A DNA stretch of 64,000 nucleotides from Pelomyxa schiedti (Eukaryota; Protista; Evosea), in contig JAHLWZ010000222.1 in assembly GCA_020536535.1 (NCBI GenBank), forward strand, positions 186,001 to 250,000, given 5' to 3'. Positions 59,783 through 64,000 of this stretch are shown piece by piece. Positions within the stretch are counted from its first letter, which is position 1. Each line of letters opens with the position of its first letter. A program made the translations under genes and the position numbers. The notes under the pieces are model-generated. The model was not told the DNA's origin. It did no database searches and worked only from the letters and a program-made list of their open reading frames with translations.

Positions 59783-60719
59783 TCACAGTATGTTGCAAAA
59801 CTTTTTCTTCTTGGGGGTTGAGTGTGCAAGAATGTCCCTCACAATTTGTGTGAATGCCTCCACAACGTTGTGCTTTGTACGGGCACTAGTTTCACTGAAA
59901 AAAACCTTTGTTAATCTGGGGTGTTTTGAGAAGATAAAAGCATACAAAAATCTTGCTGAATTAGCTTTGGCTAGGGCGTCTCCATCCTGAAAACAACGGT
60001 TATTACTTCACTGTGTTCTTTTGCTACAAGTGATGGGAATTCGTACTGCCGTAGGAATAACTCGGTCTTCCATATCGCATTTGTTACCAATTATCATCAA
60101 GTGGCGGTCTTCATCCTTGGGCTTCTGAGTCTTGATTTGATTAATTATATCTGTCAGAGCAAGGAATGAAGGCTTCAGGTTTATAGCATATACAAGTACA
60201 AATCTGTTTGTTGTACGTGAGAAGTTGAACTCTTTGTAGGTCATATAAAGGGGGGTTGGGATTTTTTTTTACCCTTGACCAGTCCGAATATACAACTCCC
60301 GCATTGCTAGACATCACATGTTAATGATACTTTTCAAATATTCGGAGGCATACTAACAAATTGCTCTGTTCCAGCAGTATCCAATATTTCCAGAAGATGA
60401 TTTGTTCCATCAACTGCAAGTGTTCTTTGGAAAGAGTTTTCAATAGACTATTAGAGTTGGTTTAGTCCAAGGTTTTGAATAGTATAATGAAAGTCTTTAA
60501 GTGTATGATACCGGCGTATAATCTGTTTCAAAGCGGTCTTGCACGAATCTTATTGTTATACAACCTAAATGGGGGGAAAAAAGACATTAAAACCATGGTT
60601 ACAACTCAGCTGCTCAAACAACATTCCACGAAGGAAAAAAAAAAAATAAAAAAAAGGTACTCACTTTTGCCAACACCACAACCGCCCAACATTACAAGTT
60701 TGATGGCCTTCGACGCCAT
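59783..60719 (-). CDS. Ras/Rap-family small GTPase with CaaX box CNIL; 5 introns
   Basis: KLVMLGGCGVGK|S (G1), YTP|SIENSF (G2), LDTAGTEQF (G3), IGNKCD (G4), ETSAR (G5), C-terminus RRKSFCNIL*. Confidence 0.9.
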
Positions 60720-60873
60720 TTCGTGTCGCGACACGTTGAAATAAAATGGAAACGAATAAAGAAAAGTTTTCGGTGTGATCTTCGCTTTCTTGTGTTCGGC
60801 GATTTGAAGAAACCCCTTCTTTTTTCGATTCTAACGAACAAGAACGCGTTATTGGTGTTGGTTGAGGGAACAA
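60720..60873. promoter_or_regulatory. Probable bidirectional promoter between the Ras-like gene and the Hint-domain gene
   Basis: Only 154 bp between divergent ATGs; position-based inference, no motif identified. Confidence 0.45.
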
Positions 60874-63345
60874 ATGGAGTTCGATGTTGCTGCAATGAAG
60901 TCTTCCCCCCGGAAGTACTTGTCAAGTTGGACCGAGACCCAATTGCGGGATTTGGTGGCCCATTTGCAAAAAACTGAGCAGGAGTCTGCACAACAATTTC
61001 TTCCAGTTGTCCTTGAAATGCTCTCTGCTTTTGAGGTGCGGTGGCACTTTTGGAAATATATGGCACTTAATTAGTTATTTTTTTTTTAGAATAGAAGACA
61101 GTCTGTTCACCGTGAGGCTTTGGAGAGATTGCACTCTGAGCCTGTAGCTTATTGCAGGACCCTCAATGCTGATCAATTGATTCAGTTGTGGTCACTTGTT
61201 CAGTGGAAAAATGGGGCCAGATTGGCTGATATCTTCATGTTGGATGCTCTGTGGGACGCAGTTGTTGCCAAAGTATTCTTACTTTGGTGATGTATTGTCA
61301 ATACCCTTTTATTAGGTGGCAGCGGATCCTGCATCTGTGATTGAAAAGTTTGAGCTGCCTGATTTGATTTACTTCTATAGAACCATGAAGCAGAGGATGT
61401 CTACTCCACAACGAGTTCCCGTAACAGTTCACCCAGCCATAATAGCTTATGTATTTCTCTGCAGGTTTACTCAACTTTAACTCCATTTCTAGCTGGAAAA
61501 GCAGTGCTTTGAGAAGGTTTCAATTAAATTGTTGCTATCCCTGTCATATCCCTTTTAGAGTGCAGGGGACACAGTGAAATGGATGCACCGCTTAAAGGAA
61601 CCTGAACCTTGGCGCCCATTAAGTGAAGAAATATCTCAGGTGAGATAACTTCTTACTTCTATTCTAATCCCATGATAGTGGCTTGATTACTGTTATACAA
61701 CGTCTGCTTTTTTAACTGAAATAAATGGATCTCATCCTGTTTTTGGAAGCTGGAGTGCTGATCTCGAAGCAATGAAATTTAATGCCTTTGGTGTATTCAC
61801 CAATCATCAACTCCGGTACTTGCTTTTTTCAGGCTTGTGAAACCTATTTTGTGTCCAGGAGAAATGGAGCCCCACCATTCCGACTCCACCGAGTCATGCC
61901 CCATTGTAGCTACGGCTCCGGGGTTCGACCTCATACTCAACTAGTGCAGTCTTCTTCCCCCATAAGGTTTTATATGTCAACTTCTCACTCAACTGACAGT
62001 TATTAGCTTCGTCAACCTCCCAAAGAACGTTGTAGTTGATATATTAACGAAAATCCTCTCCCCTGCTCCGTGCCCTTGTCACGCATACTCAGCTGTACGA
62101 CTAATATTGTCATTTGGATTTTCTCAATATTAGTAGCTTTTTAACTTGCGGGAGGTGATTTATTCTCTGTGCACTCTTGAACTCACCTGCCGTTTTTTCC
62201 ATACGCCTGTTTCCGATTTTGCTAATCGCACAATAACTGAGTATTTTTCCCACTTGCAATGTGTGGCTCCAGCAAGTCTCCACTAACACGATTGTAATAG
62301 GGAGGCAGCGCGCCTTATCTCACTTCAACTGAAGCTACACAAGGGGGGTGTACATGACTACAAGTATGAACTTTTTCATTCTGCTAAGGGTGTGTTTGTA
62401 CTCCTTCCCCACTTCAATCTCAATTAGTATAGAGCAAGAAAGGGAGTTAAAAGAAAACCTTTATGACCGTCTTTATGACGGAAGAAGACGCAATAAAACA
62501 ATAGAATCTATCATTCTCTCTGGATTTGGAGCGATTGAACCCGCCCTATGCAGGGTTAGCATAATTTCAACTCACTGATTTATTGCTTATTAAGGAATTA
62601 GCCAACATGCTTCCTTGGGGATGGAATAGTTGAAACCATAACTGGAAGCAGGTTAAAGTCCAGAATTATTCCCTTCAAAGTAAACGCCACAAAGATCTGT
62701 TGGTGATATAAGGATTGGTGATAGTGTGCGAACCGAGAAGGGCTACAGGCGTGTTGTATGTGTAAAAACAACTCCTGTCACTGGACCCACCAAACTGGTT
62801 TACATTAATGGTTTGGGTCTCACACCAAGTCACCCGATATTTGTCCCCTCAGGCCTTCGCCCCAAGGATGATCCCAAATCCATCCAACCAGTGACAATAG
62901 ACTATTCACTCGTTAAGGTTGCTTCGTCTTATTCTGCAATTTCCACTCAATTTGGCTCATTAAGTTTTCCAGAATATACCGTGCCAATGTGAGTGGATTC
63001 ATCCTTGGGAGCTAAGCAAAGCTACAATTGTCAGTGATGCAGATTTTCTCTACAACTTTGAGCTTGAAGGTATTAGCATTCCATGTTTTGAGTCCCACTT
63101 ACCTTTTTTTTTTCTCAAGGTGGGCCCAATGTAAGTTTCCTCTCTAGACTCCTTTGATGATTCGACTTAACAAAACATTAATTACATTTACAACCTGACA
63201 GGCCTATGACCACTCCATTTGGATAAACGGACTTCTCTTGGCCACACTGGGGAAGGATGTTGGAGATAGACTGAACAACAAGTGGCCTGAACTGGACAAA
63301 CAGTACACAACAGCGGTTCTTCCCCACCCAATAACATCTCATTAG
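60874..63345 (+). CDS. Multi-exon protein: helical N-terminal region, central F-box-like motif, C-terminal Hint (Vint-like) domain
   Basis: By-eye splicing gives a continuous frame from MEFDVAAMKSSPRKYLSSW through S|FVNLPKNVVVDILTKIL...VIYSLCTLELTCRFF to GFGAIEPALCR|PTCFLGDG...LTPSHPIF...LYNFEL...INGLLLATLG...*. Mid-gene junctions (61420-62430) are less certain than the Hint exons. Confidence 0.62.
62608..63345 (+). other. Hint domain (intein/Hedgehog superfamily) split over 5 exons
   Basis: Block A CFLGDGIVETITGSR|SVGDIRIGDSVRT (Cys codon TGC 62608-62610), block B LGLTPSHPIFV (TxxH), block F LYNFEL, and terminal HSIWINGLLLATLG. Introns 62652-62694, 62918-62972, 63070-63119 and 63131-63201, all GT-AG and frame-preserving. 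Confidence 0.8.
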
Positions 63346-63485
63346 ATATGGAAAAGGCTACTGGATGTCCTTGAAGAAAAAGTGGGAAGAAAGCACATGA
63401 TACTACAAAAATTCTTTTGTTGTACTTAAAACTATTACACACATGGATAAGGTGTTTTACATTTTTTTGGCTGTGGGGGCTCTAT

Positions 63486-64000
63486 TTACGGAGCGCATTG
63501 TTTGGCTGTTTGAAGGATTTTCTCCTTTTGCTCCTTTGTTTGTACAGATAAAATCAAAATCGTAGAGTCTTCAAGGTGAACTTCACACATGAAAACTCCT
63601 TTGCCTTTTTATTTTGTACTACAATTAGAAAAGACAATTAGACAAAAAACCTACCTGGCTCGTCGAGAATATCTTGTACACGTACTCTTCGCAAATCACA
63701 CTTGACTAACAGTTTGAGCTGCTTCTTCTTGTGCTTCCTCACAAGTAGTAGCATATCCGTCAATAAGTAATACAAGAGTGGTGTTTCAATTCCCTGATGC
63801 CACTCAGAAATGGCTCCTTCGGCAATTATATGACGAACACTGGTGAGTAATTCCTTGGAAAAGTGTTAGAAAGGGAACAGCCCCAGAGACATAGTTACGG
63901 GAATTTTTGGAATGAGAATCTTATCAAGTTCCTTTAACGCTTGAGTCTGCTGGTTTGTTGACTCCTGTCTCACCTGTATTGCTTTTTCAATTTTTGGAAG
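63486..64000 (-). CDS. 3' end of a PH-domain protein (probably DH-PH RhoGEF); 5' part outside the window
   Basis: LPKIEKAIQ|QTQALKELDKIL..|VRHIIAEGAISEW...LLYYLLTDMLLLVRKHKKK...|GKGVFMCEVH...ILILSVQTKEQKEKILQTAK..*: PH strands plus terminal helix after a helical segment. Confidence 0.6.

Follow-up and report, generated by a model that had tools for sequence, protein, structure and literature searches.

The 64,000 nt stretch of Pelomyxa schiedti DNA analysed here (the window) carries, at positions 60874–63400 of the + strand, a resident and expressed nuclear gene, Pelo_2884, which is transcribed into a single spliced mRNA and whose product belongs, by its C-terminal domain, to the Vint family. 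Vint was defined in 2008 as the third eukaryotic lineage of Hint domains, in which Cys1 and the Thr and His of block B turn the preceding peptide bond into a thioester. From the N-terminus onwards the protein comprises helical repeats, a WWE-like domain, a divergent F-box-like motif with a Cys/His insert, a helical linker and the Vint domain. The C-terminal domain is a genuine Hint domain of the Vint type; it retains the residues for an N-S acyl shift and is neither an intein nor a Hedgehog-type (Hog) domain.

The Pfam Vint model (PF14623) matched a 400 aa translation of the Pelo_2884 transcript (P0001) with 58.8 bits (E 7.6e-16; cutoff 27), and the 74 aa encoded by the central Vint exon alone gave 35.3 bits (E 1.3e-8), far beyond chance. 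The search for paralogues proposed in the preliminary description of this DNA led to at least nine Vint domains from Archamoebae, 36–48 % identical to the Pelo_2884 domain, which were aligned; the resulting nine-sequence family profile matched the sequence of the Tetrahymena thermophila Vint crystal structure 8R2C with E 3.9e-14. In the AlphaFold2 (AF2) model, the Vint region had predicted local distance difference test (pLDDT) values of about 76–93 over most of its length. Foldseek returned 8R2C as the top PDB match of this model (E 4.7e-7), and alignment with VIA-align gave a Z-score of 13.8 over 131 residues at 25 % identity; next came BIL2 of the BUBL locus (Z 11.2), a bacterial BIL domain (10.9), Hedgehog-C (10.2–10.4) and mini-inteins (about 10). 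The assignment to the Vint class made from the ending of the domain was thus borne out by profile and fold alike.

Both catalytic residues recognized in the preliminary description, Cys1 and the His of a TxxH block B, were present and conserved. On superposition, Cys414 (residue 209 of the model) fell on intein residue 1 and on Hedgehog-C Cys258, and C414, T471 and H474 were invariant in all nine of the aligned domains. The invariant positions included Cys1-Phe-x-Gly-Asp-Gly, a Gly-Asp hairpin, Thr-Glu, Leu-Thr-x-x-His-Pro (block B), Trp-x-His-Pro, Phe-x-Leu-x-Gly-Gly and Asp-His-Ser-x-x-Ile-Asn, of which the last may be the equivalent of intein block F. The corresponding features of the gene were as follows.

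62605–62610, + strand: predicted scissile bond T413|C414; the Cys1 codon (62608–10) is invariant and aligns with intein residue 1 and Hedgehog Cys258.
62822–62836, + strand: block B, T471-P-S-H474-P475 (TxxH); T, H and P are invariant and align with TPKHP of 8R2C.
63208–63228, + strand: D541-H542-S543 ... I546-N547 block; the columns are invariant and the His aligns with a His of 8R2C.

The Hint core ended in ...INGLLLATLGKD and was followed by a conserved tail of roughly 35 aa and then by the end of the protein. As had been remarked earlier, the terminal His-Asn of inteins was absent; neither this dipeptide nor a C-extein nor a +1 nucleophile was found in the Vint region of Pelo_2884, in the sequence or in the family alignment. 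The absence of an upstream VWA motif was upheld, there being no Pfam match to VWA or Vwaint at E ≤ 1 in the annotated protein (P0012) or in any paralogue. Of the Hint-type profiles, Vint matched and the intein- and Hedgehog-type models remained below threshold: Hint_2 reached 16.4 bits in Pelo_2884 and Hom_end_hint at most 21 bits in the paralogues, whilst Hint (PF01079) gave no match in Pelo_2884 and at most 22.5 bits in the paralogues (cutoff 29.7). A tblastn search of the window for a second Vint copy matched only this gene.

The gene corresponds to NCBI KAH3765360.1 (P0012, 575 aa), hypothetical protein Pelo_2884 of P. schiedti, which is encoded on a contig of 264,827 bp and falls into one protein cluster with P0001. 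Read in three frames, the region 60000–64000 broke up into many short open stretches, a pattern usual in intron-rich eukaryotes. The gene structure was established from RNA contigs of three single-cell RNA-seq runs (X1–X3) of one sample, labelled ‘protist metagenome’, with a DNA run (X4) alongside, which were aligned with positions 60700–63500. The alignment contained 14 joints, comprising 13 GT..AG intron junctions and one joint with GGGCCCAAT between 63071 and 63202; this last joint, seen in all three RNA runs, resolved into an 11 nt microexon (63120–63130) with a GT-AG intron on each side. The spliced contigs of X1–X3 confirmed every splice junction from 61103 to past the stop codon. Eleven exons lie upstream of those encoding the Vint domain, which is itself split by five introns. 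In total, the coding sequence (CDS) consists of 17 exons separated by 16 GT-AG introns of 39–71 nt (mostly 42–43 nt), and comprises 589 codons followed by TGA at 63398–63400. The features are listed below; splice joints are given as last|first position.

60874–63400, + strand: whole CDS of Pelo_2884; open reading frame (ORF) open across all RNA-defined junctions and equal to P0012 plus 14 aa.
60874–61035, + strand: exon 1, aa 1–54 with the start codon; NCBI model P0012, the helical repeat aligning with the N-termini of P0016 and P0006.
61090–61272, + strand: exon 2; RNA from 61103, junction 61272|61316 in X1–X3.
61316–61450, + strand: exon 3; junctions 61272|61316 and 61450|61493.
61493–61516, + strand: exon 4, a 24 nt mini-exon; junctions 61450|61493 and 61516|61559 (cut +2) in X1 and X2.
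61559–61639, + strand: exon 5; junction 61639|61679 (cut +2).
61679–61815, + strand: exon 6; junction 61815|61859 (cut +1).
61859–61966, + strand: exon 7; junction 61966|62007 (cut +2).
62007–62094, + strand: exon 8, first half of the F-box-like motif with the CxCH insert; junction 62094|62137.
62137–62240, + strand: exon 9, second half of the F-box-like motif; junction 62240|62301 in X1–X3, Pfam F-box-like 13.3 bits for the exon alone.
62301–62389, + strand: exon 10, helical linker; junction 62389|62433 (cut +1) in X1–X3.
62433–62554, + strand: exon 11, helical linker to R411; junction 62554|62602 (cut +1) in X1–X3.
62602–62651, + strand: exon 12, P412-T413 and then Cys1 with Hint block A (CFLGDG...); junction 62651|62695 (cut +2), start of the Pfam Vint profile.
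62695–62917, + strand: exon 13, Vint core with block B (TPSHP); RNA unbroken over 62693–62915, source of the 35.3-bit Pfam Vint match.
62973–63069, + strand: exon 14, W.HP.E and YNFELE motifs; junction 62917|62973, columns invariant in the family alignment.
63120–63130, + strand: exon 15, the 11 nt microexon GTGGGCCCAAT, encoding G-G-P-N; GGGCCCAAT joint in three RNA runs.
63202–63302, + strand: exon 16, DHS..ING..ATLGKD, candidate equivalents of Hint blocks F/G; junction 63302|63346 in X1–X3.
63303–63345, + strand: last intron, 43 nt, holding the TAG formerly taken as the stop; GT..AG joint 63302|63346 in X1–X3.
63346–63400, + strand: exon 17, conserved G.GYW tail (...GKGYW...EEST) and the true stop TGA at 63398–63400; RNA, tail conserved in paralogues.

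The preliminary description had divided the Hint domain into five GT-AG exons. These were confirmed by RNA at 62602–62651, 62695–62917, 62973–63069, 63120–63130 and from 63202 onwards, but the last intron (63303–63345) had been missed, so that the domain contains five introns rather than four and the frame does not stop by 63345 but continues to the TGA in all three RNA runs. The proposal that 60874–63345 forms one transcript was confirmed from 61103 onwards, where there is one contig and one ORF; 60874–61102 lacked RNA. Since a single RNA contig of 1640 nt, starting at 61103, spans both the F-box-like exons and the Hint exons, these two parts belong to one mRNA and one ORF.

The NCBI annotation of Pelo_2884 deletes the catalytic TxxH motif by means of a false intron, P0012 being the 589 aa model minus residues 467–480. 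The feature responsible is:

62811–62852, + strand: in-frame 42 nt GT..AG stretch, spliced out in the NCBI model with removal of block B and kept in all RNA contigs.

The length of this stretch equals the modal intron length of the genome and it encodes block B (TPSHP) exactly; in the paralogue Pelo_8755, a real intron begins at the codon homologous to its start. A minor isoform that lacks 62811–62852, and would therefore be without block B and unable to cleave, may exist, as contigs drop rare variants. An exhaustive phmmer search with the 74 aa core exon recovered the 100 % identical 400 aa ORF P0001 from a Logan transcript contig. Residues 17–400 of P0001 are residues 206–589 of the model; residues 1–16 of P0001 are frameshifted by an additional T in a T6 run (after 61707), which only the X2 contig carries. 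The same X2 contig also has T>C at 61137. The precomputed Pfam annotation already labels Pelo_2884 as Vint and the sequence itself is already in GenBank; the novelty lies in how the architecture is read, together with a correction of the public annotation that restores TxxH to the protein.

Upstream of the F-box-like motif, the protein is predicted to carry a WWE-like fold. The AF2 N-terminal model contained a β/α module at about aa 173–243, for which Foldseek listed PDB matches to the WWE domains of TRIP12, RNF146 (3v3l), HUWE1 (6pfl), DTX1, PARP14 and PARP11 with probability 1.00. Normalized by target, the TM-scores reached 0.65–0.77 with the crystal structures of TRIP12, RNF146 and HUWE1 and were lower with the remaining proteins, and the root-mean-square deviation (rmsd) was about 3 Å over about 75 aa; for TRIP12 9bkr the values were 0.76 and 2.9. 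In the AFDB/Swiss-Prot Foldseek search, the module matched the WWE regions of RNF146, PARP14 and TRIP12. In the Mastigella eilhardi homologue P0005, the segment aligned with this module passed the Pfam WWE cutoff (29.4 bits versus 21.1).

61571–61865, + strand: WWE-like domain, about aa 173–243, spanning two introns; AF2 fold matches and Pfam match of the Mastigella homologue.

The N-terminus itself (aa 1–170, 60874–61560) consists of two or three helical repeats that are shared with P0016 (aa 38–205) and P0006 (aa 1–187) and follow the motif P..YC.TL....L..L ... PLVDD.TYD.V. For these repeats, Atlas neighbours gave a weak lead (0.75) to the Ia domain of NAD-dependent DNA ligase, for which Pfam provided no support. 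No signal peptide was seen at the N-terminus, which was judged by eye, and the protein is probably cytosolic.

Between the WWE-like domain and the linker, residues 278–335 probably constitute a divergent F-box, although formal profile membership failed in Pelo_2884. The motif follows F-box order, with an LP..VV.DIL helix and then a SLCTLELTCRFF helix, and AF2 placed helices at aa 283–294, 300–323 and 339–350. The same region scored 24.4 bits in P0004, 23.9 bits in P0005 and 12.5 bits in P0016 against the Pfam F-box-like model (cutoff 24.3). Language-model neighbours of the segment were almost all F-box clusters (score 0.89), which was taken as a lead only. An insert containing C-x-C-H, which falls in or beside low-confidence residues 298–308 (pLDDT under 50) of the AF2 model, may together with a downstream Cys form a metal (zinc) site.

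62008–62223, + strand: F-box-like motif, aa 278–335, split by a Cys/His insert of roughly 14 aa and by the intron 62095–62136; Pfam F-box-like.
62071–62082, + strand: C299-x-C301-H302, with C318 (62170–62172), within the F-box-like motif; invariant in four paralogues.

Relatives of Pelo_2884 in P. schiedti were Pelo_13368, Pelo_8755, Pelo_18870, Pelo_17233, Pelo_16849, Pelo_18372 and P0017, with further members among transcripts of Mastigella eilhardi and in one transcript of Pelomyxa sp. JSP. The layout of WWE region, F-box-like motif, linker and Vint was common to four relatives, and the remaining members had unrelated N-termini or helical repeats only. P0017 (1075 aa), encoded on another P. 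schiedti contig and annotated as ‘Kelch-type beta propeller’, showed the Pfam order Fic (48 bits), Ras (35 bits), Kelch propeller, F-box PF00646 (20.8 bits versus a cutoff of 20.5) and Vint (69 bits). The Fic domain of this unusual multi-enzyme architecture has an intact HPFxDGNGR motif. The phmmer search with the 74 aa exon, which covered 1.84 billion representatives, found five Archamoebae proteins and one 100 aa fragment of unknown source; an FN3-repeat protein in the result was a spurious match. Viral, prokaryotic-genome and metagenome contigs scanned with the family alignment gave pattern matches, none of which was confirmed by tblastn. At the sensitivity reached, this Vint family with its varied N-terminal modules appears to be restricted to Archamoebae.

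Three Vint-domain introns of Pelo_8755, which is about 37 % identical to Pelo_2884 overall, lie at the same codon and in the same phase as in Pelo_2884, and a fourth Pelo_8755 intron, inside the Cys/His insert, lies within one residue of its counterpart. The microexon results from an extra intron specific to Pelo_2884, the paralogue P0004 having the downstream intron only. Because the Vint introns are shared in position and phase with Pelo_8755, the module is old in the lineage and is not a mobile intein, in agreement with the long residence that had been proposed from the number of introns. The architecture had also been noted beforehand as an unfamiliar one, and no description of an F-box–Vint fusion was found in the literature searched by full text.

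The closest known systems are the VWA–Vwaint–Vint proteins (PF14623; Bürglin 2008, PMC2362128; 8R2C), which share the Hint subfamily by Pfam, profile and predicted fold, as well as the C-terminal position of the domain, Cys1, a TP.HP block B, the lack of intein C-terminal residues and a presumed intracellular location. Some canonical members have a ubiquitin-ligase module, the U-box; its occurrence in four VWA–Vint proteins was the only link to the ubiquitin system noted before (PMC2362128). In contrast, Pelo_2884 has neither VWA nor Vwaint but helical repeats and WWE-like and F-box-like modules upstream, and the Archamoebae family has its own signature of W.HP.E, GGP..DHS..ING, ‘TLGK’ in place of ‘LGH’ and a G.GYW tail. 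The Hedgehog/Hog C-terminal domain (PF01079; 1AT0, 6TYY) has the same Hint fold, with Cys1 on Cys258, and the same C-terminal autoprocessing layout, in which an N-terminal ‘cargo’ is released via a thioester (a prediction for Pelo_2884); however, Pelo_2884 lacks a PF01079 match, a sterol-recognition region and, by eye, a signal peptide, and would not be expected to transfer cholesterol. BIL2 of the Tetrahymena polyubiquitin-like BUBL locus (6Y75, 6TMM), the second-best structural match, is a Hint domain of the ubiquitin system that is reported to convert a thioester into an isopeptide bond without E1 or E2 (PMC8616854). Unlike Pelo_2884, BIL2 has ubiquitin-like domains on either side and ends with an Asn, and its sequence similarity to the family profile was not significant (E 0.2).

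The upstream modules likewise resemble known proteins in part. Pelo_2884 resembles F-box proteins (PF00646, PF12937) in its LP..(V/L)..IL helix 1 and L..L..(V/T)C(K/R)(R)F helix 2, which occur in the right order, and the Kelch protein P0017 passes the F-box cutoff at the same position relative to Vint. It differs from them in an insert of roughly 14 aa with invariant CxCH...C between helices 1 and 2, in having F-x-T-P for the helix-3 Trp motif and in the N-terminal placement of the recognition modules relative to the box. With the WWE ubiquitin ligases (RNF146, TRIP12, HUWE1, Deltex) it shares the predicted WWE fold, in this comparison placed at about aa 156–243, preceded by helical repeats as in TRIP12 and coupled to a putative ubiquitin-ligase module, whereas it has no RING or HECT domain and its WWE is not detected by Pfam.

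By analogy with other Hint domains, Cys414 would attack the carbonyl of Thr413 with the aid of T471 and H474 in an N-S acyl shift, and the thioester would then be resolved, in the simplest case through attack by water or a small thiol. In Hint domains without a C-terminal Asn and a +1 nucleophile, no splicing takes place and an external nucleophile resolves the thioester, as in Hedgehog and BIL domains (PMC2362128, PMC8616854). Protein splicing is not expected in Pelo_2884 because there is no Asn cyclization and no C-extein. Cleavage at T413|C414 would free a 413 aa fragment comprising the repeats, WWE, F-box-like motif and linker from the 176 aa Vint domain; in the released fragment the F-box-like motif would lie about 78 residues from the new C-terminus and WWE would act as the recognition module. 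The Vint domain would thus serve a putative ubiquitin-ligase adaptor as a single-turnover maturation device or pro-domain switch. Such simple self-cleavage or maturation is slightly favoured over its alternatives taken together, and the ubiquitin-system context, namely the WWE fold, the F-box-like scores at or near threshold in two paralogues, the F-box just upstream of Vint in P0017 and the known U-box–VWA–Vint proteins (PMC2362128), speaks for it.

A number of results weigh against this account or against parts of it. No Vint cleavage assay was found to be published in the literature searched, which also yielded no paper for structure 8R2C, and Pelo_2884 has a Lys where canonical Vint domains carry the His of their C-terminal ‘LGH’. 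The AF2 models were built on shallow family alignments (5–9 sequences) and had a mean pLDDT of 66–69, with values of only 51–76 by 10-residue block in the WWE-like region, and Pfam WWE (PF02825) gave no match to P0012 residues 165–250 at E ≤ 10. The F-box-like motif noticed in the preliminary description stood as far as its position at 62008–62223 and the scores of two paralogues are concerned, but in Pelo_2884 itself it reached only 16.2 bits (E 0.009), below the cutoff. A profile of the region found no F-box among all PDB sequences, hhalign against the F-box region of P0017 gave nothing (probability 0.1), and no F-box chain was among the Foldseek matches listed for the N-terminal model in PDB and Swiss-Prot AFDB, a comparison that is weak for helical motifs of roughly 45 aa. 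RNA depth in the X1–X3 contigs was nil over 60874–61102 (exon 1 and 13 nt at the beginning of exon 2), so that support for the start codon comes from the NCBI model P0012 and from the homology of the N-terminal repeats to paralogues.

The Vint domain might instead have been kept as a substrate-receptor, dimerization or thiol- or metal-sensing module in a precursor that stays intact. F-box proteins normally bind their substrates through a domain that follows the F-box, the position occupied by Vint here, and the replacement of the ‘LGH’ His, the divergent or truncated Vint C-termini of the paralogues P0007, P0009 and P0010 and the lack of a published assay all fit with this. It is nevertheless unlikely, as the invariance of Cys1 and TxxH in nine paralogues at 36–48 % identity is hard to explain without acyl-shift chemistry, and paralogues already possess upstream recognition modules (WWE, Kelch). 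If the chemistry is retained, the Thr413 thioester could be attacked not by water but by a lysine of a target or by a lipid or sterol, with attachment of the WWE/F-box fragment without E1 or E2. The thioester-forming residues are intact, the nearest structures after Vint are BIL2 and the bacterial BIL domain, and, as PMC8616854 reports, BIL2 attaches a ubiquitin-like domain to lysine residues, among them lysines of a Ras GTPase; in addition, extra invariant polar residues (T-E, W.HP.E, DHS) could place a second nucleophile, and Vint in this family is repeatedly associated with ubiquitin-system modules. Ligation is quite unlikely all the same: only the conserved tail follows the Hint core, with no region resembling a sterol-recognition region, on which ground Hedgehog-type sterol transfer was rejected; no signal peptide was seen, no acceptor domain adjoins Vint in the way that ubiquitin-like domains flank BIL2, and hydrolysis and transfer are not distinguishable from sequence. 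The more specific proposition that Archamoebae have coupled the Hint thioester to SCF-type adaptors (WWE or Kelch F-box proteins), with transfer to lysine or lipid without ATP, E1 or E2, is decidedly unlikely; if true, the covalent anchoring of an adaptor on its target or on a membrane would represent a new mode of deployment, similar in principle to BUBL/BIL2 conjugation.

Two further explanations concern the gene rather than the chemistry. A merger of two genes, a pseudogene or bacterial or viral contamination might be suspected in a single-cell assembly of an endosymbiont-rich amoeba (PMC8887013, PMC10579272), and the frameshifting extra T in one RNA contig and the lack of RNA coverage over exon 1 could be cited in support. 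An artefact of this kind is very improbable, given that contigs of three runs join the exons from 61103 to the stop codon in frame, that the extra T is present neither in X1 nor in the DNA, that the gene has 16 spliceosomal introns, that the same architecture recurs in paralogues on other contigs and in homologues from Mastigella and Pelomyxa sp., and that the viral, prokaryotic and metagenome scans produced no relatives. A mobile intein, or a bacterial-intein-like element inserted in a host gene, would share the Hint fold, Cys1 and block B, but is scarcely credible for a C-terminal domain with no C-extein, no His-Asn and no +1 nucleophile, with no homing endonuclease, with intein-type Pfam Hint scores below threshold and with introns shared with paralogues.

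No biological role of Vint domains was described in the literature searched. The Archamoebae family provides small, soluble and expressed examples in which Vint follows recognizable ubiquitin-system modules (WWE, F-box or F-box-like, Kelch) and not VWA, so that what Vint releases, and why, becomes directly testable. If cleavage or transfer does occur, it would link Hint autoprocessing to the biology of cullin-RING adaptors and would yield a self-cleaving tag of natural origin from an anaerobic eukaryote.

A gene for a small Ras/Rap-like GTPase occupies 59783–60719 on the - strand, head-to-head with Pelo_2884 and some 150 nt before the start codon of the latter. Fragments of the GTPase ORF read ...KLVMLGGCGVGKS... 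and ...IIGNKCD....

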